IMG/VR virus record: IMGVR_UViG_3300040801_004034
Coordinates: 1 to 64,000 of that record
Length of the DNA: 64,000 nucleotides
Strand: one strand, 5' to 3'
The first letter of the stretch is position 1, and every line of letters begins with the position of its first letter. The position numbers and the translations under genes were made by a program. A model generated the notes under the pieces. That model was given only the letters and a program-made list of their open reading frames with translations, was not told the origin of the DNA and ran no database searches. This document shows positions 20,004-61,030 of the stretch, piece by piece.

Positions 20004-21314
20004 ATGCCAACACATACTACAACACAAGATTTAGACACAAACTCACCACAAATCGATGGTGCTACAGCTACAAAAGGTTCATTCGGGGTAGCACCGGATG
20101 GTACACGTTATGTTAAAAATGGGCCAGCTGATACTGATTGGGAGGTTGCTGGTACAGGAAGCGATGGAGATGCTACTAACCTTGATCCCTTATTGTTACG
20201 TCAAGCACAGTTAGCACAAGAATACATTGATGGTCAATATACAACAAGTGAAATTAAAACTATCCCGTTTACACCTTCTGTAGCAGGTGATCCGAATAAT
20301 CAGTTTCGTTGCGGTGTTTATGATATCATTAAAGAGCGTATTATATTTATACCAACAAACGGTGAAAAATTTAATATTATAGATCAAAATACTAACACAA
20401 CCACACAATCTACATTCGGTTTAGATCTTACTACACCTAATTGGATATCTGTTTGCTTAGGAAATGATGGTAAAGCATATGCTACACCTGACGCTGATAA
20501 CATTACCGGATTTCTCATTATTGATTTAGAAAACGATACAGCTACTGAATCAAGATTTGGTTTACCGCTTTCAGCTTTCGAAGAAAATGAATTTGGTAAA
20601 GTACAATGGCTTGGAATTTGCAACGGTGGTAATGGAAAGTTGTATGCAATGCCATTTAACAGTAATTTTGTATGCATTATTGATACAGAAACACAGACTG
20701 CTGAGCTTAAAGATTATGGTCTCGATTTTGTTGGAAATGGATCATATAGAGGTTGTATTACAGGTCTTGATGGTAGAATTTACGGCACACCGCTAAATTC
20801 TACTTCGGTCCTTATTATAGATCCGGTAACTGACACAGCTACGCAAACCGATTTCGGTATTGATATGAACGATCAACAATGGAATTATGCTGGTACTGGT
20901 CCTGATGGTAAAATTTACTGCTTACCATATAGAGCAGAAGGTGTATTAATAATTGATCCAGCTACTGATACAGCAATAGTAAAAGACTATGGTGCTGATT
21001 GGGCGGTAAGACGACCAGCATATAGAGGAGCTTCTACAGGTGTTGACGGTAGAATTTACGGTTTTCCATATAGAGGTATACGTGAAATTGCTATTCTTGA
21101 TCCTGTTGCAGACACACTCGAATTCACAACAGCTGGTATAGATTTTGATAACGGTGGTACTAATGGTAGCTCCCTTCGTTATGATGGTGGCGTTATTGCT
21201 TCAAACGGTAATTTATACCCTGTAATGGCAAAAGGTGAGGTACAACTTGTTATAGAAAATAACTTAATTAAAAGTTTCCCAAGAGCATGGACACCACCAT
21301 ATAATAACAATTAA
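20004..21314 (+). CDS. beta-propeller protein, putative receptor-binding or decoration protein
   Basis: Six to seven repeats of GxDG[KR]IYxxP…ILIIDPxTDTA. Confidence 0.65.
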   Translation: MPTHTTTQDLDTNSPQIDGATATKGSFGVAPDGTRYVKNGPADTDWEVAGTGSDGDATNLDPLLLRQAQLAQEYIDGQYTTSEIKTIPFTPSVAGDPNNQFRCGVYDIIKERIIFIPTNGEKFNIIDQNTNTTTQSTFGLDLTTPNWISVCLGNDGKAYATPDADNITGFLIIDLENDTATESRFGLPLSAFEENEFGKVQWLGICNGGNGKLYAMPFNSNFVCIIDTETQTAELKDYGLDFVGNGSYRGCITGLDGRIYGTPLNSTSVLIIDPVTDTATQTDFGIDMNDQQWNYAGTGPDGKIYCLPYRAEGVLIIDPATDTAIVKDYGADWAVRRPAYRGASTGVDGRIYGFPYRGIREIAILDPVADTLEFTTAGIDFDNGGTNGSSLRYDGGVIASNGNLYPVMAKGEVQLVIENNLIKSFPRAWTPPYNNN

Positions 21315-22045
21315 TATATTTCTTCTAGTTTTACAAAACAAGCAAACGCATTAATTTCTTTGTCCATAACAATTGCATCTTTGTATAAATGCTCACTTAT
21401 ACATAAGATATAACGTTTGCTCTGTTCATCGCTAAGATCTTCACACTTGTAAACATGTTCCAAGTAACCTCTCATCAAGGCATGATAATCACCTTGGAAC
21501 TCGCTGTCATTCTCAATCAAATACTTTCTAAGCTTAAGAGATTTCTTACCTGTAATACATTCATGCATGAATGAGTATATGTTATTGAGATTGGTCAACG
21601 TTTGAATATCTAACTTACCATCAACACAATTTTTCTGTACTTCGTTAATGATCTTACGTATATCTGGAAAGTTATTTTTGATAAGCTTACCAAGCTTTGA
21701 TTTCTGCTCACCACTAACGGTAATACCTTCAGCTGATAAGATATGAGCAACCCTCTTAAGAACATCACCAATATCAGCTGTAAAGTCGAATGACTGTGTT
21801 CTACTCTGAAGGGCTGGAATGATCTTGTGCTTGTAATTAGCTGTAAGTATAAACCTGGTTACCTCACTATACTCTTCAATTGTATTTCGTAGGGCTTTTT
21901 GGCCATCTTTTGAGAGCCCGTCACAATTACTCGTTAATACTTTTTTATTTCCAACAAAGAAATTATGTGTTTCATCAACTGAAAGGTCATAAACTTTCTT
22001 CTTTATACCAATTTTTGTTATTTTTTTAATCTTTAATTTTTGCAT
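21311..22045 (-). CDS. gp44: clamp loader large subunit gp44, C-terminal half preceded by a 40-aa split-intein C fragment
   Basis: VYDLSVDETHNFFVGNKKVLTSN|CDGLSKDGQKALRNTIEEY…FILTAN…ALQSR…FPDIRKIIN. Confidence 0.92.
   Translation of the reverse strand: MQKLKIKKITKIGIKKKVYDLSVDETHNFFVGNKKVLTSNCDGLSKDGQKALRNTIEEYSEVTRFILTANYKHKIIPALQSRTQSFDFTADIGDVLKRVAHILSAEGITVSGEQKSKLGKLIKNNFPDIRKIINEVQKNCVDGKLDIQTLTNLNNIYSFMHECITGKKSLKLRKYLIENDSEFQGDYHALMRGYLEHVYKCEDLSDEQSKRYILCISEHLYKDAIVMDKEINAFACFVKLEEIY
21926..22045 (-). mobile_element. split intein C fragment (40 aa, ends T-S-N; +1 Cys)
   Basis: Intein blocks F/G: VYDLSV…HNF…SN|C. Confidence 0.9.
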
Positions 22046-22970
22046 ATGCCTTTCTCATCATTTTAAGTTGTAATAAATTATCATCTTCAAATTTTGTTTC
22101 GTCAATATATTGTATAATATTTTCTTCATTAATCCATTTAAATGACATTTCATTCTGATCACAATATTCTTGCAATGCTGTCATTTTGTCTATTTCTATA
22201 TTATATCTATTTTTCGGTTTAATTTCATACATTGTACGGGTTTCCGGATCATAAAAATCTGAAATGTATGTTTTGACATCTGTTTTGACTCGTATCGTTT
22301 CATACTCACAATGTTGGTTACATAACCAAAAGCATGCTTCCCACGAACTTCTAAATTTTTTAGTTGTTTCCCCAATTACTATTTTTGCATCCCAGTGTGT
22401 CCATGTATTAGTAATGTTTGGTGTGTATTCACCTGATGCGATTTTCCGTTTCATGGTTCGTGACATTTTCTTTGAACACATCTTTTTATGTTGTTTACCT
22501 TCTTCAGTTTCGTAGAATTTTTTCATACGTTTTGATTTTTTATTCCGCTGAGCTATACCTGCATCTGTCTTATTATATTGTTTAAGTGTTTTACGTATTT
22601 TTTCTATTTCAGATTCAGTTTTTGTGTAATCTCTTAGTTTTGTCCACACACGTTGTTTAATTTCTGATGGCGTATATTTTTTCCAACCGGTCCAACCTTT
22701 AAATGTTCCTGAATAAGAAAAACTATCTTCTGTTAACAAAATTCCAGAATATAAGCTATAGTGCGGTTCTTCGAGTAAAAACAAAAAATGATTAACACTG
22801 GGTTTATCCATCCAGTATACCAAGTTAGTAAACCACAACTTATGTGTATCATATACCTTTTTTGTTACAGGATTATAATAACGTACCTGTTTTTGTTTAT
22901 AATCTTGTACCAAATGTTTTATTGACTCTTTTGAATATGATTTTCTATTCGTTCGATTGCCACCTCTCAT
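22026..22970 (-). mobile_element. free-standing homing endonuclease (NUMOD3-like repeats plus TnsA-like PD-(D/E)XK domain) between the gp44 halves
   Basis: FRSSWE…YE…YISDFY…YEIKP; start placed at ATG 22970, 5 nt after TAAATA. Confidence 0.8.
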
Positions 22971-22974
22971 ATAA

Positions 22975-23316
22975 TTATTTATGACATTCAACAGTAATAC
23001 TATCAACCTTTGTTAAAATTGTATCTATTCCTTTTGAGATCATATCATCTAATTTCATCCTTTCAATCTCACCGTCTTCATTTTCAACATACCATTTATG
23101 ACTACCAGTACATATTATTTTTTCATCATTTTCAAATTCAAGTTCGTAACAATCTTGTTCACCCATGTAAAAATGGCTAAATGGTCTATACTCTATTCTG
23201 TCTTTTATTTGATTATATGACATTACAAGATCATTATCATGATCAAGATCTTTAATAGGTTGAGTACATTTTTTACCATCTCTCAATACATGGACTGGTG
23301 TATTCTCATCAAGACA
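22975..23316 (-). mobile_element. split intein N fragment (113 aa)
   Basis: Block A CLDENT and block B CTGSHKW, followed by a stop codon. Confidence 0.9.
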
Positions 23317-23625
23317 TTCATCAAGCACAATGATCTTCAAATTTTTATCAAACGATTTCGTCTGTGCAAATCCTACAACTTTACTTCTGATAGTATCAAT
23401 ACCGTTTTCGTCAGATGCATTGATATACATATAATCACATTGCAACTTACTAATGATGATTTTCGCAAGCGTTGTTTTACCAATACCTGGTGTACCACAA
23501 AATAACATATGCGGTATTTCAGATGTTATATTTTCAAAATACTTACGATTTTGATTTGACAACACTAAGTCGTCTAATGTTTGAGGTCTGTAACGTTCTG
23601 TCCACAATTGATTAAATTTATCCAT
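22975..23625 (-). CDS. gp44: clamp loader large subunit gp44, N-terminal half followed by a 113-aa split-intein N fragment
   Basis: WTERYRP, GTPGIGKTT, INASDENGID, IIVLDE|CLDENT…IICTGSHKW. Confidence 0.92.
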   Translation of the reverse strand: MDKFNQLWTERYRPQTLDDLVLSNQNRKYFENITSEIPHMLFCGTPGIGKTTLAKIIISKLQCDYMYINASDENGIDTIRSKVVGFAQTKSFDKNLKIIVLDECLDENTPVHVLRDGKKCTQPIKDLDHDNDLVMSYNQIKDRIEYRPFSHFYMGEQDCYELEFENDEKIICTGSHKWYVENEDGEIERMKLDDMISKGIDTILTKVDSITVECHK

Positions 23626-23631
23626 ATTGAT

Positions 23632-23659
23632 ATTATAGTTTATGTTTATGGTTGTTCAA
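23632..23659 (-). promoter_or_regulatory. early promoter TTGAAC-N16-TATAAT, 6 nt before ATG
   Basis: Read directly from the sequence. Confidence 0.75.
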
Positions 23660-23675
23660 TAGATTAAATATTTTT

Positions 23676-23912
23676 ATGTACAAAACAGAACTCGAACTAA
23701 TCAACGAAGCTTACTATAATAGATCAGAGCAGGAATCTGATGAAGTATCAACTCAATATGATGAAATGGTGCCAGTTTCAATGGAAGAAGTGGTACATTA
23801 CTACATCGAAATGGTATCAGATGTTGCCGGAGACGGTCGTGAAGCGACCGAGCTTCGCAAGTTTGCCAATTTCGTTGATAACAATAGTTACGAAATCAGA
23901 GCAAGCGGTTAA
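23676..23912 (+). CDS. small acidic late protein (LINEAYY motif)
   Basis: Start placed at ATG 23676, 5 nt after TAAATA. Confidence 0.6.
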   Translation: MYKTELELINEAYYNRSEQESDEVSTQYDEMVPVSMEEVVHYYIEMVSDVAGDGREATELRKFANFVDNNSYEIRASG

Positions 23913-24154
23913 ATCTTTTTATCTTTGTTTACAGAGAGATTATATGTCCTCAAAACCCATCCAATGGTATAAGCAACGTGCACAGGTGTTGTATACCAAT
24001 ACTCTGTAAGAACAAGCATCATGTACCAAAATGGTTGACTAACCCAACCGAGCACAACACCTATAATCTTCCACTTACGTTGCTCGCTCATAGAGCAAAT
24101 AAATGCAGCAGGACCAAAGATGCCGATACCGAGTTGTGCAATTAAATCAAGCAT
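23909..24154 (-). CDS. small membrane protein
   Basis: 81 aa with two to three hydrophobic segments; coupled to dut by a TGATG overlap. Confidence 0.6.
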   Translation of the reverse strand: MLDLIAQLGIGIFGPAAFICSMSEQRKWKIIGVVLGWVSQPFWYMMLVLTEYWYTTPVHVAYTIGWVLRTYNLSVNKDKKI

Positions 24155-24642
24155 CAGCGACCGCTTGATCCGAAACCGTGTGCGCCTCGTTCTGCCGGGG
24201 TAATTTGATCAGCCCATTCAACTGTTGTTACATAGTTCTTTTCAATCTTAATTTGCGCAACTTTATCACCTTTCTTATAGTGATATGGTATACCTGTCAG
24301 ATTGTATATTTTTACACCAAGATCAGACCTGTAGCCGGTGTCGATTTCCCCGAAGTGTGGTTGAATACCATGTTTAAACCCTAAACCAGACTTTGGTTTA
24401 ATAACAAATCCAAACCCTGGTGTAATGTTACCGACTGTAATACCTGTAGGTACAACAGCGTGCCCGACATCTACACCACCGGTTGTATCAACTTTACTAC
24501 GTGGTATTGTAGTATCCTCTACAGCAAACAGATCGTAACAATTATCATCATGATGGGCCTTTTCAGGTAATTTAGCATCATCATGGGTTTTTACAAATTC
24601 GATTTTACAATCAATACGCTGGATGTTATTTTCTTCATTCAT
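24154..24642 (-). CDS. dut: trimeric dUTPase
   Basis: YDLFA, PKSGLG, GEIDTGYRS, GDKVAQ, RGAHGFGSSG. Confidence 0.95.
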   Translation of the reverse strand: MNEENNIQRIDCKIEFVKTHDDAKLPEKAHHDDNCYDLFAVEDTTIPRSKVDTTGGVDVGHAVVPTGITVGNITPGFGFVIKPKSGLGFKHGIQPHFGEIDTGYRSDLGVKIYNLTGIPYHYKKGDKVAQIKIEKNYVTTVEWADQITPAERGAHGFGSSGR

Positions 24643-24648
24643 ACACCT

Positions 24649-24676
24649 ATTATACAGTATGTGTTTGGTTTATCAA
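24649..24676 (-). promoter_or_regulatory. early promoter TTGATA-N16-TATAAT, 6 nt before ATG
   Basis: Read directly from the sequence. Confidence 0.75.
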
Positions 24677-24697
24677 GATATCGACTAAATATAATAA

Positions 24698-25183
24698 ATG
24701 GATAATGATGAATTAGATGATTCAGTGAATGACCTTATAAGTCAATTACAATCAATAGATAACAATACAGGCGTACAGAAAAGCCAAAAAGAATTGACAC
24801 CTGAAGATGTGGAAAAATTTCTTGTTATGAGTTCTGGTAAGCTTGTTACAGACTCGCTTGATGTTGTAAGTACATTAAAGGAATACGTAAGAAGCTCGCC
24901 AAACCCGGAAGATGTAGAGGCACTTGCAAGAATACTTTCATCAAGTGCAGCAGCTATTGAAACATTGAACAAGATTCATATTAACGAAAGAAAAATCACT
25001 GCTCAACGACAAATCAAAGAGATGGATATTGAGAGTAAAAAAGAAATTGAAGAACAAAGATCTAATGCTGGTGCTCTTACGATAAATCGTGATGAATTAC
25101 TCGATTATATGATCTCTAAAGCTAAAGTAATCGACGCAGATGCAACAGATGCTGAGGTAGCTGAAATTAAAGATGCTACCTAA
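24698..25183 (+). CDS. probable terminase small subunit (gp16-like)
   Basis: 161 aa, helical; SPNPEDVEALARILSS…IETLNKIH and RDELL resemble the gp16 core; late motif upstream. Confidence 0.55.
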   Translation: MDNDELDDSVNDLISQLQSIDNNTGVQKSQKELTPEDVEKFLVMSSGKLVTDSLDVVSTLKEYVRSSPNPEDVEALARILSSSAAAIETLNKIHINERKITAQRQIKEMDIESKKEIEEQRSNAGALTINRDELLDYMISKAKVIDADATDAEVAEIKDAT

Positions 25184-26024
25184 CTGCACTAAGTGAATCA
25201 TTCATTGTAGGCGCCCCCGATTCAATTTTATTCAAAAACATATCTACCTGTGTTGTAATGCCTTCAACATCTAACGTTACTGGGATTAACTTTGCAACGT
25301 TCTCGTTCTCACGAATATTAACATTTTTAATATAAAATATGAACTCACCCATTTCTTTAAGAGCTGAGATAAGACCTTTTTTCGTTTCGTCTTTAAAATC
25401 GAACAATCGCTCATAATACTGATAGTCCACAACATGATTTTTACCATGTGATGTTGTACTATCTGTTTTGGTAACAGACCCGTTTATTCCTTGCAAATTC
25501 TGCTTCATCAGCGCATCAAGATGAAGCGACATTTTAACTTGTAGTAGTTTGTTATGGTTTGTCGTTTTGTTGAATAATGTAACAGGTGTATTCATTACAA
25601 CAGGGGATTCTTCACTGAATATATCAAAGAATGGTGATAAACTGTTGTCAAAGACTGTCGTATGCTCTGTTAACAAACCAATATCATCAGAATACTCAGT
25701 GAAATACTGATTGCTCGAACCTATTATCGTTTGAATTGATTGTTGTAGTGCTGATGATAATGAATTGAATTTCTCAATAAAATGATTTTTAAAATTGTTA
25801 TCAAATAGCTCAAACCGTTCATCATTCAATTGTTTATAAAGTTCAGCTGTAGCTTGTATAGCTTTCGGATCACATTTTTTTGTTTCAAACGCAATGCTTG
25901 AGTCTAATGCATCGATGTATTTGCTGAAGATGTCTAACATGTTACTTGCTGATCTGTAGTATTCAGTTGTCGGTAATACAACAGTATCTACATAAGCTGG
26001 TAATAATGATGTCTGGTATGCCAT
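25176..26024 (-). CDS. hypothetical protein in the tail/baseplate operon
   Basis: 282-aa ORF coupled to the upstream gene by TAATG. Confidence 0.6.
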   Translation of the reverse strand: MAYQTSLLPAYVDTVVLPTTEYYRSASNMLDIFSKYIDALDSSIAFETKKCDPKAIQATAELYKQLNDERFELFDNNFKNHFIEKFNSLSSALQQSIQTIIGSSNQYFTEYSDDIGLLTEHTTVFDNSLSPFFDIFSEESPVVMNTPVTLFNKTTNHNKLLQVKMSLHLDALMKQNLQGINGSVTKTDSTTSHGKNHVVDYQYYERLFDFKDETKKGLISALKEMGEFIFYIKNVNIRENENVAKLIPVTLDVEGITTQVDMFLNKIESGAPTMNDSLSAVR

Positions 26025-27586
26025 TATATTGTATCCTCCTTAAATTGCGGATCAGTAAAGTGGTACGTCTTAACAGCAATCACTTTGTTATAGTATTCTG
26101 TTTCGTTAACAAACACATGTTCTACATTAATAATGAAATATGTACCTATAAACTTTCTATCGAACTTATTATCCACATACTGACCATCACGCTCGACGTT
26201 TATAAATTTACCAGAACGTCTAAAAACTTGACCGGGTAATGTTAATTCAACACCAATGTTGGTAAGAAGAGCATTACGTAGGAATTTGTTTACCCCAGCA
26301 TTACGCTTCAACGCTGGGTTATTTGCGTATTGCGAGAATGTGTTTTCGTGTGATAGGTTTCTGCGTTTAGTGTCGTTAACAATAAGATTAGGTGATGGCT
26401 CACCATTTTGTCCTTTCATACCATCAACATAATTTTGCGCAAATACACTCTTTCCGGTTTCAATATTACTTGATTTCTGTTCAGCATTAAACTGTTTTTT
26501 GTCATAATCGTATGAATGTACAATTTTTGTATTAACTTTGTTTGAAAGAAGAAGACTATCAGTATTAAAGAATTTGTAATCTCTTACTTGACTTTGTTCA
26601 CCGAATGACGGTGATATAAGTGGTGTTTTTCTTTCGTTTTCTGAAAGCGTACCACCTTCTTCTGGTAACCCGGATATGATTACTGTTTCGATTGCATCTT
26701 TACCTGCACTATCAGTATCTACACCTTTAACATACGCTCTTGAAAACTTTTTTGAAACACTTTCGAGAGAATAAAGACCTGTGTATTGATGTTTGCTCAA
26801 AATACTAAAATCGGAAACTGTATCATCACTAACATGTCTATCATAAATATACATCATATCATCATATGCAGAACTCTGTGATGGTGAACTATAAAATATT
26901 TTCGATGCACCGGGTTCAAAATTTTCACCAGCTGGATCGATAATAGCATTTATATCACCTACAAAGAGCGCATCTTTAAGTATGAGTTTAAGACAATTGC
27001 CTGTCGATACTTGTCTTTCTTCATTCGTAAGATTTTGAACCTCTAATGGGTTGTCAAGATTGAGTAACTTTGTTGTAGAGAAGAATATGTTCTTCTCTCT
27101 TAACAGCAACTCATCATAATCCATAAGTTTAAAACGTTTGTATGAACCTTCTTCTTCTGTTATTTCTTCATCATATTGACATACAAATGTATTTCTAAAT
27201 CCAAACACTCGTTTAAACTCTTCACCTAAATCACTATAAGCGTTCTTTTCAATAGGTATAATTTCAAGATACATTATATCTCTACCATCACCTCGAATAT
27301 TAAACCCTTGTACATCGTTTAATTCCGGATTTTGCTCGGTGTCCGAATTACTAAATTTTAATCTTTCAAACACATTATCATTATTCTTAATAACCATATC
27401 AGCTGATGTGAATGGTGAAAAAATATTATCGGTAATTGTCAATGTCTTAATACTAGACTTTGTAATTGGTAATACATTGTTATCCGGGTTTAAAAACACC
27501 GGTTTGAATATGTATTTCTGCTCATGTAAAATACACTCAAAATTTTGTGAATCTAGTTCATTCAGTAATGTGTTATTGATTGGCAT
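26024..27586 (-). CDS. baseplate hub protein (gp27-like)
   Basis: LTITDNIFSPFTSA…LPGQVFRRSGKFI…GTYFIINVEHVF; follows gp53. Confidence 0.6.
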   Translation of the reverse strand: MPINNTLLNELDSQNFECILHEQKYIFKPVFLNPDNNVLPITKSSIKTLTITDNIFSPFTSADMVIKNNDNVFERLKFSNSDTEQNPELNDVQGFNIRGDGRDIMYLEIIPIEKNAYSDLGEEFKRVFGFRNTFVCQYDEEITEEEGSYKRFKLMDYDELLLREKNIFFSTTKLLNLDNPLEVQNLTNEERQVSTGNCLKLILKDALFVGDINAIIDPAGENFEPGASKIFYSSPSQSSAYDDMMYIYDRHVSDDTVSDFSILSKHQYTGLYSLESVSKKFSRAYVKGVDTDSAGKDAIETVIISGLPEEGGTLSENERKTPLISPSFGEQSQVRDYKFFNTDSLLLSNKVNTKIVHSYDYDKKQFNAEQKSSNIETGKSVFAQNYVDGMKGQNGEPSPNLIVNDTKRRNLSHENTFSQYANNPALKRNAGVNKFLRNALLTNIGVELTLPGQVFRRSGKFINVERDGQYVDNKFDRKFIGTYFIINVEHVFVNETEYYNKVIAVKTYHFTDPQFKEDTI

Positions 27587-27588
27587 TG

Positions 27589-27951
27589 TTAAAGTTGTCT
27601 ACGTATCGCATCAACAACAAGTTTAATATACTTGGGTTTCACAATGCGTATATCTCTCCCTACAGGTAAGTTCTTAACAGGGTTAGATATATTATTTACA
27701 ATTAAAATCAGCCACCACAAGTGCATAGTACCATATGCATTATACGATATTGTTGTGAGGGGAGATTTTTTAACAAGTTTTATTGCATCAAAGTAATTAC
27801 TATTTAAATCATCCGGTAACTCTATTTTCTTGATTATATTGTAGAAGTAATAATCTCTTTCACCTGTTTCATACACACGGAAAATATTCTCGAATCTGTA
27901 TGATTCAAGTGTTGGTAAATCTGGTATATTATTTTGATATTTCCCGTTCAT
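27589..27951 (-). CDS. gp53: baseplate wedge gp53-like (LysM-like)
   Basis: ISYNAYGTMHLWWLILIVNNISNP. Confidence 0.8.
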   Translation of the reverse strand: MNGKYQNNIPDLPTLESYRFENIFRVYETGERDYYFYNIIKKIELPDDLNSNYFDAIKLVKKSPLTTISYNAYGTMHLWWLILIVNNISNPVKNLPVGRDIRIVKPKYIKLVVDAIRRQL

Positions 27952-27954
27952 ATG

Positions 27955-29259
27955 TTAGTTAGTTAAATTTCGAACAGCTGCTTTTGTTGTATTGCTATGT
28001 TCTAATGGAATTATATCTGGAGACGAAATACCACCAGCATTATACCCAGGTGTTGGTCCCCCAGCTACATTTGATGTACCTAGAACAGGTTCCGTTAACG
28101 TTTCACCACCTACAGAACTTGTTGTTACAAGACCTGGACTAATACTTTCATAAAGAAAGTTACGTGTTTCTTCGTTAAGTCCTGAAATTGTTATATTCAC
28201 TTGATATGCATCTGGTATAATAGCTTCTACTCTTTGAACACCTACATCAGCATCATCAGAAGATGTTGTAACCGGTAATGGTATTTTCATCTTACGTCTA
28301 CCACCAATAAAGTCGACTGACATGTTTGAAATGTAGCTATACGGCATAAACAACACCCCGTCTATAATAGTTTCATAAATAACAGGTAAATCAACAAGTG
28401 TTCTTGTTATTCGGCCCGGGCGATTTTGATATACTAACCCGAAAATAAGTTGCCAATTTTGTGCTACATCATCATATGTACCAGTATTTAGCAACGGAAA
28501 TGAAATATTAATATTTCGACCTTCTTGCTGCATTTGAAACTGTCTTGACTCTTCAATATACGTACCAGGTCGGAGGGCTTGAGCAACACTAGCTAGGTTT
28601 GCAGCAATATCTACCGCAGCACTTGCAAAACTACTTGCAATATTTTGCTGATTTTCTCCCATTTGAGTTCGTAATTCAGAATGTTTATTATCAAAGTATG
28701 GTAGGTTATATTCAAAACCTGTATCTTCTAATGCATAAAGACCATTATATGGTTTCAACACATTGCTTGTAAACTGCGCTCCACCGCCTAACTCTGTAAT
28801 AGCGTTTTGTGCAGCCGAAATTGTCTCTGAAATTTGCTCGCTTGATATCTGAGCAATACTACCCACATTTTGGCCGATTGATGTTTGACTCAATGCGTTA
28901 CCGCCTGGTATCAAATTCTGTACTGTAGCTGCTGAGTTTATTAAACTATCTACACCTGTACCACCCGCACCAAGAGCAGCATTTAAACTATATGCAAGAT
29001 TTGTGATAGTGCTATTCTTTGTTATACGTTTTTCTTTAATACGAACACTCGGTGTATCACGACGTGATGTTTGTGGAGACTTTGTCCATTGAAAATCGTT
29101 AACGACATCAATAGGGCTTGTAGGGTTTCCTACAATAAGCTTTTCATACACAGTATTCGCAGAAAAGTCTATATCATTACCTGTTATACTAGTAGATGAG
29201 CGTACTAGAGCAGGTATTGTACCGTCTTTACCGAATTTAAGTGACCATAAGTTTGACAT
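27955..29259 (-). CDS. baseplate tail-tube cap (gp48-like)
   Basis: Position between the tape-measure-like gene and gp53; YISNMSVDF…YQVNITI tube-fold strands. Confidence 0.45.
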   Translation of the reverse strand: MSNLWSLKFGKDGTIPALVRSSTSITGNDIDFSANTVYEKLIVGNPTSPIDVVNDFQWTKSPQTSRRDTPSVRIKEKRITKNSTITNLAYSLNAALGAGGTGVDSLINSAATVQNLIPGGNALSQTSIGQNVGSIAQISSEQISETISAAQNAITELGGGAQFTSNVLKPYNGLYALEDTGFEYNLPYFDNKHSELRTQMGENQQNIASSFASAAVDIAANLASVAQALRPGTYIEESRQFQMQQEGRNINISFPLLNTGTYDDVAQNWQLIFGLVYQNRPGRITRTLVDLPVIYETIIDGVLFMPYSYISNMSVDFIGGRRKMKIPLPVTTSSDDADVGVQRVEAIIPDAYQVNITISGLNEETRNFLYESISPGLVTTSSVGGETLTEPVLGTSNVAGGPTPGYNAGGISSPDIIPLEHSNTTKAAVRNLTN

Positions 29260-29269
29260 CTACTAATAT

Positions 29270-30970
29270 TTAATACGAGTGTCTGTATTGAAGATCACGC
29301 AGTCCATTACCATTGAAATTAATATGTGTAACTTTATTAGATGATGATATATTGTTTGTACTAGGGTTTTGGAGTCTTGCTTCAATATTTTTGAGAACCT
29401 CTGTATTCTCTTTTTGAATTGCTAACTGATCTTCTGCAATTTGTGTAAGTTCTTTTACACTTTCATCAGTTTTCTGTTCTTTTTTCTGCTGTTTGGTATT
29501 TGCATATGCAGCAACATCACTAACACTGTTACGTTTTCTGAGTTCATCTTTAATAAACTTCATGTCCTCATCACGCAAATCATTATCATCAATTATAGCT
29601 TGTAACTGCATGTCTGTTGCAGCAGTAACTTTGTTTTTATCAATTTCAGATGCACCAATTATATCTTTATTATAAAGGCCAGAAGTTTTCGCTGATTTAT
29701 ATGCATCAATTTCCGCATCACCGGCTCCGCCATCATCAAATCCAGGTATACCAAGAAGGCTTGCTACTTTTGATTGTATACCGAACATTTTCGGAAACGA
29801 GTTGATAATTCCAGTCATTGCTTTCTCTCGTATAGCTTTGAACAAGTCTTTAAATGAACCTTTTGGAGCACCTCTTTCACCTGTTTCTTCATCAACTTCA
29901 CCAAACAAGAAATCAGCTAATGGTTTAACAAATGGTATAGCATATGCCATTTCAGTAAAACCTTCTTTAAAATTACCAGTAAATACTTTACCAACACCAC
30001 CCCAGAATTGAAACAGGTTTTTGATCGGATAGCTATTCATCATTTTATCTTTGATTTTACCAAAAAATTCTTTGATTTTGAAACCTTTTCCTTCACCTGA
30101 CTTGCTTGTATCTTCTGATGGTGCGGTATTCATAAATGCATTTAGTATATCGATACCAATACCAACAGCTGTACCAATACCAGGGAAGAGATATGCAATA
30201 CCTGAAGCTACATTCATCATACCACTAATTAGATCACCGTTCTTGAAATCTTTAAATGCAAATGCCCATGATATCATTGACCCAATACCTGGTAGTCTAC
30301 CTAATACTGGTTTTAGCATTTTACCAGCTAAACTAACAATTTTAGAAAAAATACCTTTACCAGCACCTTGACCTAGTATTTTTGCAAACGGTTTCATAAT
30401 CATACTTGCTACTGATTTAAACACACCTTTGACTTTTGTTATAACAGTATCAAACACTTTAGTATTTTTTACAATACCAAGAGCTTTACTTATGATTTTT
30501 GATAAACCGCTAATAAACGTCTTGATAGGCTTCATAATAGTATTACTCAATACTTTAAGACCACCCATAATACCACCTTTTGCAAGCAAGCTCAGAAATT
30601 GTGAAAGTGGACCATCTGACATCAACCCTTTCACTAGAGCAGCTAGACCACCCAAAACAAGCATACCACCAAGCATTAGTTTTTTTATAAAGCCTGAATC
30701 ATCCTTACCTTGCTTACCATCCTGACCGTCTTGACCACCACCATATGCTGAACGTTTTAAATCATCTTCAGCTTTGCGTCCAAAATCAGTAACAATGACA
30801 GACTTAGGCTTTTCAATTACTCTATCAGCATCCTGTCCAGTAACTTTACTTTCACCAGACCCTGTAACCTTACCAGTAAGAGATTTTACATTCTGAGCTG
30901 TTTGTTCAGTAATTTTTGTTACCTTTGATACGAGTGATAAAACCTCTGCAATTTGTATAGCGTCTGCCAT
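29270..30970 (-). CDS. tape-measure / baseplate hub (gp29-like) protein
   Basis: G/A/K-rich amphipathic helices; LPGIG and FPGIGTAVGIG motifs. Confidence 0.6.
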   Translation of the reverse strand: MADAIQIAEVLSLVSKVTKITEQTAQNVKSLTGKVTGSGESKVTGQDADRVIEKPKSVIVTDFGRKAEDDLKRSAYGGGQDGQDGKQGKDDSGFIKKLMLGGMLVLGGLAALVKGLMSDGPLSQFLSLLAKGGIMGGLKVLSNTIMKPIKTFISGLSKIISKALGIVKNTKVFDTVITKVKGVFKSVASMIMKPFAKILGQGAGKGIFSKIVSLAGKMLKPVLGRLPGIGSMISWAFAFKDFKNGDLISGMMNVASGIAYLFPGIGTAVGIGIDILNAFMNTAPSEDTSKSGEGKGFKIKEFFGKIKDKMMNSYPIKNLFQFWGGVGKVFTGNFKEGFTEMAYAIPFVKPLADFLFGEVDEETGERGAPKGSFKDLFKAIREKAMTGIINSFPKMFGIQSKVASLLGIPGFDDGGAGDAEIDAYKSAKTSGLYNKDIIGASEIDKNKVTAATDMQLQAIIDDNDLRDEDMKFIKDELRKRNSVSDVAAYANTKQQKKEQKTDESVKELTQIAEDQLAIQKENTEVLKNIEARLQNPSTNNISSSNKVTHINFNGNGLRDLQYRHSY

Positions 30971-30990
30971 ACATATATTTATACGCTAAG

Positions 30991-58090: not shown

Positions 58091-58477
58091 TCAACTCATT
58101 CTACCTAGTTCATCCGAAACGTCATCAATATCGTTTCTTCTTGCAGCAAGATTATCATCCTCTTCAATCCAAAGCGTGTCATAATTGATTCTCATTGCAT
58201 TACTACCGAAATTCGGTCCGAATCTATTTTTAACTGAACCTATGTTGATAATACCTAGTTCTTTATCTTCAGGAGATTGAAAAATATTGTAAATAGCATC
58301 ACAAGTAGCAGCAAGACCGTATGATTCACTGATTGTATCAAGCCCTGGTGAATTTTGACCATATCCACTATTATGTGTTAGAATTCCATTTGCAAAAAAT
58401 AAATTATCATCCGATACAGATATATCTACTGTTTCAATTTCACCTATTTCTTGTATTTCTACTATTTCATCAACCAT
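58091..58477 (-). CDS. gp41: replicative helicase gp41, C-terminal part preceded by a 36-aa split-intein C fragment
   Basis: TVDISVSDDNLFFANGILTHN|SGYG…SESYGLAATCD…KNRFG; start placed at ATG 58477. Confidence 0.9.
   Translation of the reverse strand: MVDEIVEIQEIGEIETVDISVSDDNLFFANGILTHNSGYGQNSPGLDTISESYGLAATCDAIYNIFQSPEDKELGIINIGSVKNRFGPNFGSNAMRINYDTLWIEEDDNLAARRNDIDDVSDELGRMS
58370..58477 (-). mobile_element. split intein C fragment (gp41-1-like, 36 aa; +1 Ser)
   Basis: Blocks F/G ending THN|S. Confidence 0.9.
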
Positions 58478-59660
58478 AAAGGTGTTGTTTACATTTTTCA
58501 ATTGTTTCATCAGGTTTTTCATTATAATCTTTCTCCCATATTACCAGAACATCAAATCCTAGATTTTTTATTATAGCTTGTTTTTCTGCATCTTCAATCC
58601 AAATTTGCTCACATGTAAGATCATTATAAGGATTAGGTTTATCAGTGTTACGGTAAATATCAGGGTTACCATGGAATACATCACCATTAAATTCAATAAC
58701 TTTTTTTCTATCAACATTTACATAATCATAAAAGAAGCTTCGTTTTTTATGTTGTTTATGAAATTCTTTGTTTTTGATCGCATAATATGTATTTTCAGTG
58801 TTACTATCAATCAACTCAAATAGTTGTTGTGATATTTTTGAGAAACCAGAGACCCCTATAGCGCTGTGTGTACACCAGTGTAAATATTTTCTTTCACCGA
58901 GTTCAATACCGTATTTACTAATATAAAAATCTTTTGTATTCCTAAATCTGCATAGTTCTATATGTTTTTCATATTTTTCAGCGCCTTCTTTTTCACCATA
59001 CTTCCTTTTAAAAGACTGCAGCGATTTATGATCTTTAGCTTGTTTCATTTTTTTCGGACCATCTATAACACCATATTTTTTAATAAACCCTTCTTTTGAA
59101 CTACCGAAATGTAGTTTCATTATTTTTTCGTTGTATAATATTACACCTTCATCTTCTCCGTATTTTTGTATATAACTCTCTAACGTATGTTTTTTCTTTT
59201 CCTTTTCTCTCATCAATCTGAATCTTTTACGACCATCAGCATCACCGTATTTTTTTACAAATCGTTCAATCGTTTTATTACCTTTATTATTTTCACACTT
59301 TTCAGCAAATTTCTCACGTCCTTTTATTTCCCCATATAATTTAACATAATTATCAATAGTATGTGCTTTTTTATTACACGCTTGTTCATACCGTTTTTTA
59401 CCTTCCTTTTCTCCAAACTTTAATATACAACCTTCTAGTGTTGATGCAGATTTATACATTTTATTATATTTTTCTATCTTTTTAAGACGATCTAGCCACG
59501 GAAACGGTATATCATACTCGCAAAATCTTGCTAACTGAACCATTTGCATGATAGATAGTTTTTCATAAACATCTTCAATAATTTGTATTTGTTTCTGCTG
59601 TTGCAGGTCAGGGGTTTTATTACAATGTTTTTTCCAGTTTTTTGACTTGTAGTATACCAT
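58470..59660 (-). mobile_element. free-standing Vsr/DUF559-like homing endonuclease between the gp41 halves
   Basis: About seven KYGExEG repeats; FYD…VIEFNGDVFHGNP…VLVIWEKDY; ATG 59660 lies 6 nt after TAAATA. Confidence 0.85.
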
Positions 59661-59695
59661 AAACATTATTTATGACTGCTACACAGATTAACATG

Positions 59696-59965
59696 CTATT
59701 TCTCAGTAAAAAGTTTATCACCTACCTCTAAACCAGTATTGATTGATTTTACAAGCTGATTGGATACTGGAAACATATGTTTACCGCTACAAATAATTTC
59801 TTTACCAGACTTTAACTTTATTTTATAACATTTTTGCGTTTCTACAGGATAAACATATCTCACATCAACATATTTTTTTGACCCTAATATTTTATCTCCT
59901 ATTTTTAAATCAACAATGCGTTTATTACCATTTGGTGTTTTCACCACAGTATTGATATCCAAGCA
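59696..59965 (-). mobile_element. split intein N fragment (gp41-1-like, 89 aa)
   Basis: Block A CLDINT.V.TP.G and block B IICSGKHMFP, followed by a stop codon. Confidence 0.9.
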
Positions 59966-61030
59966 TCTGTTAATCTGAGATGCTGTGATTATAGGGCAAC
60001 TAAAAATGTATGACAAGGCTCGAACCTTTTCAGACACACCTTTAATACGTTCATAAAGCTGACTATTTTCATTACCTTTAATCAAATTCAAATAGTCAAG
60101 AACGATTGCATCAAATTTAAACCCTGAACTTTGTACTGATTTTAAATAACCCTGCAATCCTTCTACAGTAACAGTGTTAGGTGGAAATTCTTTTACAACA
60201 ATTGACCCTTGTTTTGGTTGACCTTCTTGCTCATTCATCATGTGCTTGAGTGTTACTGTTTGAGACTTAAGTTCTCGTACAGGTATTTTCGTTAATCCTG
60301 ATACGAGTCGTCTACCATACATCATTTCAGCCATTTCAAATGATATCAGTAGTACGTTTTTACCGGATGCTGCTATATTACATGCAACATTACCAAGAAC
60401 AATACTCTTACCAATATTAGTCTCACCGACGAACATGTATAATGAACGACCATTTTGTAAAAAGCCGCCATCTAAACTATTATTCAACCAATCCCACCCA
60501 GTAGTAATTGTCGGTTCATCGACATTCAAATCATCGATTAAACGATCAATATCTTTAAAGAGATCAAGACCAATATCAGTAGTAAGGTCAACATTACAAC
60601 TCCTCTCGAAACTATCTAAAATATAAGCTGTATCAATATTACCTTGTGAAAAATCCTCTGCAACACTCAACATTGTATTGTAAATTGCACGTTCTTTAAT
60701 AAAACGCTCAGTATTACTTACCAATTCATCTTTATCAAGAACACGATCAAAGTCTTTTACTTCCTTGATTATGTTTTTGAAGTTTTCTTTGAGAGTATCG
60801 TTAACCAAGAACGATTTAATCTCTGTTATGGTCGGTATTTTCTGTCGACGTTCATAGAACGTTTTAATAACAGTAAAAACATTTTTGATATCTTTGTTCT
60901 TAAAATGACTTGGGTCTACAAAAGGTATTACTTGTGTTAAGTATTGCTCATCGAACAGGCATTGATGTATTAAAATCTTCTCAAAAAAATCTGTATCTAG
61001 TCTTTGTTTTTCCATTTGTTTAGAAACCAT
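59696..61030 (-). CDS. gp41: replicative helicase gp41 (DnaB-like), N-terminal part followed by an 89-aa split-intein N fragment
   Basis: TTGW, GETNIGKS, SFEMAE, KEFPP, LDYLNLI, TASQINR|CLDINT…ICSGKHMF. Confidence 0.93.
   Translation of the reverse strand: MVSKQMEKQRLDTDFFEKILIHQCLFDEQYLTQVIPFVDPSHFKNKDIKNVFTVIKTFYERRQKIPTITEIKSFLVNDTLKENFKNIIKEVKDFDRVLDKDELVSNTERFIKERAIYNTMLSVAEDFSQGNIDTAYILDSFERSCNVDLTTDIGLDLFKDIDRLIDDLNVDEPTITTGWDWLNNSLDGGFLQNGRSLYMFVGETNIGKSIVLGNVACNIAASGKNVLLISFEMAEMMYGRRLVSGLTKIPVRELKSQTVTLKHMMNEQEGQPKQGSIVVKEFPPNTVTVEGLQGYLKSVQSSGFKFDAIVLDYLNLIKGNENSQLYERIKGVSEKVRALSYIFSCPIITASQINRCLDINTVVKTPNGNKRIVDLKIGDKILGSKKYVDVRYVYPVETQKCYKIKLKSGKEIICSGKHMFPVSNQLVKSINTGLEVGDKLFTEK

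Follow-up and report, generated by a model that had tools for sequence, protein, structure and literature searches.

A clamp-loader gene of a microbial-mat phage divided at its Walker B motif by a predicted split intein and a free-standing endonuclease gene

The DNA considered here, the window, is a stretch of 64,000 nucleotides corresponding to positions 1 to 64,000 of IMG/VR virus record IMGVR_UViG_3300040801_004034. Its source genome is a single phage contig of 221,292 bp with 35.5% G+C, from a microbial-mat metagenome assembly, and is rated 100% complete by CheckV. On the minus strand of the window, positions 21311-23625 hold three packed genes in which a clamp-loader gene lies in two pieces, with the break inside the Walker B ATPase motif. 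We propose that the locus is a "fractured" clamp-loader gene, made up of a split intein at Walker B and a free-standing homing-endonuclease gene, and that protein trans-splicing is very probably the explanation of this arrangement. Since the endonuclease gene lies between the two halves, the locus counts as a fractured gene of the type described by Dassa et al. in 2009 (PMC2677866), and since that gene has its own start and stop codons in the intein loop, the clamp loader would be made as two polypeptides. The initial annotation of the window had recognized the two halves and had placed the split intein at 21311-23625, coordinates that proved exact, but it missed the endonuclease gene of 314 residues at 22026-22970.

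The two halves and the intein they carry

The N-half (22975-23625; all the features of the locus are on the minus strand) encodes 216 residues. Its N-extein (23317..23625) supplies clamp-loader residues 1-103, with Walker A as GTPGIGKT and Walker B running as far as Asp-Glu, the end being ...IIVLDE. The N-intein follows (22975..23316; 113 residues and a stop codon), with Cys1 opening block A (CLDENTPV) and with Thr70-x-x-His73 (TGSH) as block B. The ATG of the free-standing endonuclease gene (22026..22970) is at 22970, 4 nucleotides past the N-intein stop codon, its stop codon is at 22026, and its 3′ end overlaps the start of the C-half by 20 nucleotides; the source genome holds one copy of this gene. 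The C-half (21311-22045), of 244 residues, begins with a C-intein of 40 residues (21926..22045) that has a Lys-rich N-terminal part, a block F with Asp20 and His27 (VYD...THNFF; ...VYDLSVDETHNFF) and a block G that ends the intein as Thr38-Ser39-Asn40. The C-extein (21311..21925) starts Cys-Asp-Gly and comprises the +1 Cys and 203 more residues, 204 in all, plus a stop codon; both the SRT arginine-finger region and the Gp44 lid domain lie in this part. The DE|C break, the Thr-Ser-Asn end and the histidines of block B (TGSH) and block F (THNF), all given in the initial annotation, are read directly in the translated halves.

The identity of the host gene is supported by several comparisons. The N-half covers positions 8-109 of PHROG 168 (clamp loader of DNA polymerase) and the C-half covers positions 99-307, in colinear matches (E 6.5e-36 and 1.9e-36), and the two halves are the sole clamp-loader matches in the complete 221-kb genome. 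The Gp44_lid domain of Pfam is found in the C-half with 37.5 bits against a cut-off of 27, the locus matches RFC small-subunit models of NCBIfam, and the Ser-Arg-x arginine-finger motif, compared by eye with the SRC motif of RFC, is SRT here. In the intein-free, 304-residue relative P0123, the N-half aligns to residues 2-103 and the C-half to the end (304), and the alignment is gapless over the junction, which falls at the DEAD motif of P0123. Those RFC models of NCBIfam that bear an intein themselves align with the N-half only to about position 59, which is the P-loop.

The inserted segments, in turn, both exceed curated intein cut-offs of NCBI. The model for the N-terminal region (TIGR01445) scores 25.3 against a cut-off of 24.5 over residues 104-179 of the N-half, and that for the C-terminal region (TIGR01443) scores 30.3 against 15.6 over residues 17-41 of the C-half. 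The evidence goes far beyond what chance would give. Cys1, Thr70 and His73 are invariant in 41 relatives, as are Asn40, Cys41 and Asp42 in the C-intein alignment of relatives. Searched against the Protein Data Bank (PDB) as a single sequence, the N-intein gave non-significant matches only, and a profile was therefore needed: that of 41 N-inteins matched NrdJ-1 (E 7e-5), Npu DnaE (2e-4), gp41-1 (2e-3) and Spl DnaX (8e-3), and the best match of the C-intein profile was the C-fragment of Npu DnaE (1.7e-4). An AlphaFold model of the contiguous relative L048, with a predicted local distance difference test score (pLDDT) of 86, has the Npu DnaE intein as its first Foldseek match (E 8e-9, template-modelling scores 0.72/0.80). 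Inteins lead the 65 PDB matches of this model at E <= 0.001, with inteins and intein-like domains following Npu DnaE. The two intein halves of the window are also predicted to pair: their complex has an interaction prediction score from aligned errors (ipSAE) of 0.76, the best of three controls reaching 0.04, and this mark was attained by 51 of 78 solved complexes and by 2 of 108 mismatched pairs. These comparisons support a naturally split intein of class-1 type at Walker B of a gp44/RFC-type clamp loader, for which splicing is predicted.

In the mechanism that we propose, the N-intein, with a net charge of −12, and the C-intein, with a complementary net charge of +7, would pair into one HINT fold. 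Class-1 protein trans-splicing would begin with an acyl shift at Cys1, aided by the Thr and His of block B, and proceed through attack by the +1 Cys and cyclisation of the terminal Asn to an S-to-N shift. The spliced product would be a clamp loader of 307 residues in which Walker B reads DECD. Because the break lies in this ATP-hydrolysis motif, no active clamp loader would be expected before splicing. Splicing itself we infer from the sequence.

The initial annotation took the +1 nucleophile to be the motif's own Cys. There is indeed a Cys at +1, but it is not native to the motif: in 101 intein-free relatives, Walker B reads DEAD in 91, DESD in 9 and DECD in 1. Since the intein-free relatives read DEAD, we count the +1 Cys as associated with the intein, with which it travels, replacing Ala. 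The sole DECD allele among the 101, P0188 (304 residues), indicates that Cys is tolerated at this position, and it and the nine DESD alleles could be footprints of precise intein loss or, alternatively, sites ready for an intein.

The penultimate His (G:6) of inteins usually helps Asn cyclisation and is common but not obligatory. Its absence, which the initial annotation stressed, is real but not unusual. Of 48 unique inteins in this family, 31 have His at the penultimate position, 15 have Ser and 2 have Gly, and the window intein lies within a Ser clade of the intein tree. Splicing without this His is documented for other inteins, the textbook case being the Ssp DnaE split intein (Chen et al., 2000; Sun et al., 2005).

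Distribution of the family and alternative explanations

A metagenome search for gp44/RFC inteins at the same site, as recommended by the initial annotation, was productive. In a protein collection clustered at 90%, the N-half has more than 120 relatives, with 47-74% identity and lengths of 190-232 residues, and all of them have the Asp-Glu|Cys junction and the block B pattern T-x-x-H-K. Seven look-ups gave eight loci in which the three genes are arranged alike, in several unrelated neighbourhoods on contigs of 100-313 kb, and a scan of IMG/VR added 80 further loci. The fractured three-gene layout is found in L003-L010, in L097 and in about 60 of the IMG/VR loci. The 48 unique inteins fall into three groups: split forms with a long gap (37), contiguous mini-inteins of 142-149 residues (7), and split forms in which the gap is only −29 to 116 nucleotides (4). 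The gap holds the same endonuclease family in all 37 long-gap loci (hmmsearch E 1e-33 to 1e-161); the four short-gap loci are without this family. With about 70 metagenomic phage loci carrying it in one of these three forms, the allele is common in metagenomes, not rare. The suggestion that it is a new or little-studied member holds for the open literature searched, in which we found no description of it, but not for its abundance.

With the N-intein profile, a library clustered at 50% yields 919 proteins at E <= 0.001, of which 92 reach E <= 1e-10; a Pfam scan of the more distant relatives, which lie in other proteins, gave no host family for them. In GenBank, the same fractured clamp loader is present in LR756500.1, an unannotated record of an uncultured 462-kb phage (L097:2483-5228), where the endonuclease is larger (443 residues, with a Cys-rich N-terminal extension) and the C-intein ends in Thr-His-Asn. 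Apart from LR756500.1, the 50,697 GenBank phage records, a collection from which the window's own or very near genomes may be excluded, gave no N-intein match with tblastn; a DNA search of the 50,697 records with the locus gave no match either. Three candidate carriers from tblastn, Pseudomonas phage pf16, Halovirus HCTV-5 and Synechococcus phage S-CAM3 (80-99% coverage of the N-half), were rejected: their clamp loaders are intein-free, at 315-327 residues, and the alignments had simply run on.

Some members of the family depart from the common layout. In L007 (4634-5602), which lies on a contig of 313 kb, degradation has left open reading frames (ORFs) of 149 and 41 residues of the endonuclease gene while the intein is still split, which looks like a decay stage of the cassette. 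In L085, the short spacer between the N-intein stop codon and the endonuclease gene contains a 12-nucleotide unit, TTGTGTGAGTAA, repeated five times in tandem. The clamp loader of L012 (1672-4553) is in three parts. A piece of 88 residues leads up to the P-loop (GTGK) and is followed by an N-intein of about 33 residues and then by a Vsr-like endonuclease gene (1943-2968); the last piece has a C-intein of about 130 residues, ending in His-His-Asn with a +1 Thr, and in addition a contiguous intein at Walker B. The P-loop intein of L012 thus looks atypically split, with a short N-part and a long C-part. Two N-half representatives of 284-290 residues, P0241 and P0243, have two intein stretches and may resemble this case.

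Several observations weigh against a trans-splicing intein in the window. Either half alone stays below the Pfam Intein_splicing cut-off of 35.8, which contiguous relatives exceed with 50.9 and 37.1 bits, and Ser39 stands in place of the penultimate His. Since the predictor used for the complex of N-intein and C-intein may be recalling solved split-intein complexes, its score is to be read as likeness to known split inteins and not as activity. The sequencing runs that hold the sequence are all DNA, the four holding most of it being from one microbial-mat sample, and no RNA runs holding it were found. Lastly, the fold of the endonuclease is assigned from several matches, each of them weak.

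With these points in mind, other explanations of the locus have to be considered. The intein halves might now serve as docking domains, with the clamp-loader pieces assembling non-covalently and without splicing. Assembly of this kind by remnants of a mobile element is documented for the fragmented NrdA of phage Aeh1 (PMC3045599), and the missing penultimate His of the window intein would agree with it, as would a TGN sub-clade that is also without the block F His (TNNF). Nevertheless, all nucleophiles and the Thr-x-x-His of block B are invariant over more than 100 clusters, which would be unexpected for docking alone. In addition, because the break is inside Walker B, an unligated chain would put about 150 extra residues in the ATP site, and the near-identical contiguous alleles must splice in cis for any clamp loader to be made. 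We therefore consider docking without splicing improbable.

It is still less probable that the 0.93-kb interval is a self-splicing intron with an endonuclease ORF, the mRNA then encoding a contiguous, cis-splicing mini-intein. Group I introns with endonuclease ORFs are frequent in T4-like phages, and contiguous mini-intein alleles do exist in this family. However, the ORF occupies the entire gap, from 4 nucleotides past the N-intein stop codon to the 20-nucleotide overlap with the C-half, so that there is no room for an intron core, and Rfam gave no intron or other family at E <= 1. The N-intein stop codon and the C-intein start codon are conserved, moreover, and four loci are still split at gaps of −29 to 116 nucleotides. 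We give equally little credence to a decaying, non-functional clamp-loader gene or an artefact of assembly. The locus is known from DNA alone, through metagenomic assembly, but none of its three frames is broken, all three are conserved across dozens of independent samples, and it encodes the sole clamp loader of a complete 221-kb genome. Contigs from the four runs of the source sample agree, with no variants or joints, and this agreement, together with the many independent contigs, excludes an assembly artefact.

The endonuclease gene, expression and mobility

The endonuclease matches PHROG 22417 and PHROG 15427, the latter labelled endonuclease. There was no significant sequence match in Pfam, NCBIfam or the PDB, a PDB profile search with the endonuclease alignment came back empty, and no GIY-YIG or Vsr-like (EDxHD) Pfam match was found. 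The weak Pfam matches are to the TnsA-like N-terminal domain PF08722 (E 0.027, below the cut-off) and to Tox-REase-9; the top Foldseek match is TnsA (1t0f; probability 0.84, E 0.32). Its feature neighbours, or nearest clusters, in the Atlas carry PF08722 and NUMOD3, with structural template-modelling scores of 0.53-0.66. The C-terminal domain has FRSSWE, D-F-x-D and Y-E-x-K-P as invariants, among them a Glu...Asp...Glu-x-Lys pattern in which E211, D238/D241, E249 and K251 are invariant. Four weak lines of sequence and model evidence agree in suggesting a TnsA-like PD-(D/E)xK nuclease.

This enzyme would be the engine of mobility. It probably cuts alleles without it in co-infecting phages, whereupon repair would copy the cassette in; the cleavage target is our inference. 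In cultured T4-like phages, terminase and helicase genes have related nuclease domains next to them or inside them; in Shigella phage JK32, Escherichia phage HY03 and others, these domains are beside or inside the large terminase gene. Some records of T4-like coliphages annotate the terminase twice, which may reflect interruption by the same nuclease family. The placement of the nuclease in T4-like phages fits a homing lifestyle, and the present locus suggests that large phages use a family of TnsA-like nucleases as homing endonucleases.

As to expression, the spacing of 4 nucleotides and the overlap of 20 nucleotides suggest co-transcription of the three genes and translational coupling between them, and a purine-rich stretch lies directly before the C-half ATG. 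A sigma-70-like site (23632..23659, minus strand) has TTGAAC and TATAAT separated by 16 nucleotides, the −10 hexamer ending 6 nucleotides before the N-half ATG. It is only a candidate for the early promoter that the initial annotation assigned to the N-half, because such sites are not enriched in the region (19 against 16.6 ± 3.6 in shuffles). As to the late motif said to lie upstream of the C-half, the minus strand from 20351 to 30976 has no exact T4-type late promoter TATAAATA, and only a match of 7 in 8, CATAAATA, overlaps the stop codon of the N-half. In the relatives, an exact TATAAATA stands upstream of the endonuclease gene in only 4 of 37 loci.

The family also bears on how inteins become split. 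In the intein tree, contiguous forms are sister to split ones in several clades (L026/L023, L053/L054, L012/L013 and L048+L050/L038), L051, split without endonuclease, is sister to L072, split with endonuclease, and at least three changes are needed for each state. In the protein alignment, the insertion point of the cassette falls precisely where the N-intein ends and the starting Met of the C-intein follows, a Met that is already present in the contiguous form. The endonuclease tree recovers most clades of the intein tree, and endonuclease and intein therefore largely diverged together.

Inteins are mostly more alike than the exteins around them, with a median difference of 10 points over all pairs. 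Four pairs combine inteins of 90-97% amino-acid identity with exteins of 59-78%. For L026/L023 and L051/L072 the same holds at the DNA level, with 97-99% for the intein and 73-84% for the flanks, and the window's own intein shows a milder version against its nearest relative, L003 (intein 75%, extein 65%). This contrast suggests recent horizontal transfer, that is, homing.

It is tempting to propose, although we do so tentatively, that a single clamp-loader intein lineage may now be moving between diverged phages, switching repeatedly between contiguous and split forms as a co-diverging TnsA-like endonuclease gene enters and leaves the loop. If so, the endonuclease would home into the intein and not into the host gene, and the family would offer natural near-isogenic cis/trans pairs along with natural His, Ser and Gly variants at the penultimate position. 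The family includes all the stages through which a mini-intein is proposed to become a split one, some as near-identical pairs, and the change of inteins from cis to trans thereby becomes directly testable. The inteins may also be a source of new orthogonal split inteins for protein engineering, with a C-half of 40 residues and a Cys at +1.

Comparison with known systems

In open-access papers and bioRxiv, subscription journals and intein databases being outside this scope, we found no phage clamp loader described as carrying a split intein, and the locus may be regarded as a selfish element of known kind whose occurrence in this host gene is apparently undescribed. The hosts of fractured genes listed by Dassa et al. 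(2009, PMC2677866) are gp41, IMPDH, DnaE, NrdA, NrdJ, ligase and terminase, with no clamp loader among them, and the endonucleases of the described cases are GIY-YIG or Vsr-like. The window locus resembles these genes in having N-extein with N-intein, endonuclease gene, and C-intein with C-extein in succession on one strand, in the overlap of the endonuclease 3′ end with the C-half start, in an N-intein of about 100 and a C-intein of about 40 residues, and in the existence of split loci without endonuclease. Moreover, NrdJ-1 is its best sequence match among solved structures (E 7e-5). It differs from them in its clamp-loader host, in its TnsA-like PD-(D/E)xK endonuclease (weakly assigned), in having +1 Cys and not Ser and a penultimate Ser, and in that its family includes contiguous mini-intein alleles too.

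The window itself holds a second fractured gene, at 58091-61030 on the minus strand, for a gp41/DnaB-like helicase. The helicase N-half with its N-intein (59696-61030) is followed by a free-standing ORF of 398 residues (58470-59666) with a Vsr-like motif, EFNGDVFHGNP, and by the helicase C-half (58091-58522), in which Thr-His-Asn closes the C-intein and Ser is the +1 residue. The layout is that of the classic gp41-type fractured genes of Dassa et al.

The Ssp and Npu DnaE split inteins provide the closest solved fold and the closest C-intein sequence, although the identity of DnaE (Npu) to the contiguous relative L048 is about 25%. As in the window intein, the +1 residue is Cys, the N-half is acidic and the C-half is basic, and the C-terminus of the DnaE split intein is Ala-Ser-Asn. 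DnaE is likewise without the penultimate His (Sun et al., 2005). The hosts differ, however, DnaE being the alpha subunit of a polymerase, and the DnaE halves are encoded at widely separated places of a cellular genome, no endonuclease lying between them.

The intein of cyanobacterial DnaX (Pol III gamma/tau) lies in the protein that is the clamp-loader ATPase's cellular homologue. The intein is contiguous and, by the wording of the description (PMC4760082), placed immediately after Walker B. Mini and endonuclease-bearing forms are interspersed and have near-identical splicing domains, and the endonuclease, a LAGLIDADG enzyme encoded out of frame, is thought to be a secondary invader (bioRxiv 10.64898/2026.09.14.751524, September 2026). 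The profile similarity of the Spl DnaX mini-intein to the window family is weak (E 0.008 and 0.004), with the insertion sites compared by description only. Unlike the window intein, that of DnaX is contiguous, has its LAGLIDADG gene in an overlapping frame and resides in a bacterial host. The pattern of mini and full forms in DnaX is a close cellular parallel to that of the window family.

Finally, the inteins of archaeal RFC small subunits are contiguous and occupy four other sites, the P-loop being the commonest and none being at Walker B (PMC4760082). They resemble the window intein in their host, a clamp-loader AAA+ ATPase, and in their insertion into conserved ATPase motifs, and differ from it in being contiguous and at those four sites. 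With the present locus, the clamp loader would join those replication proteins for which interruption by a split intein and an endonuclease gene is known.

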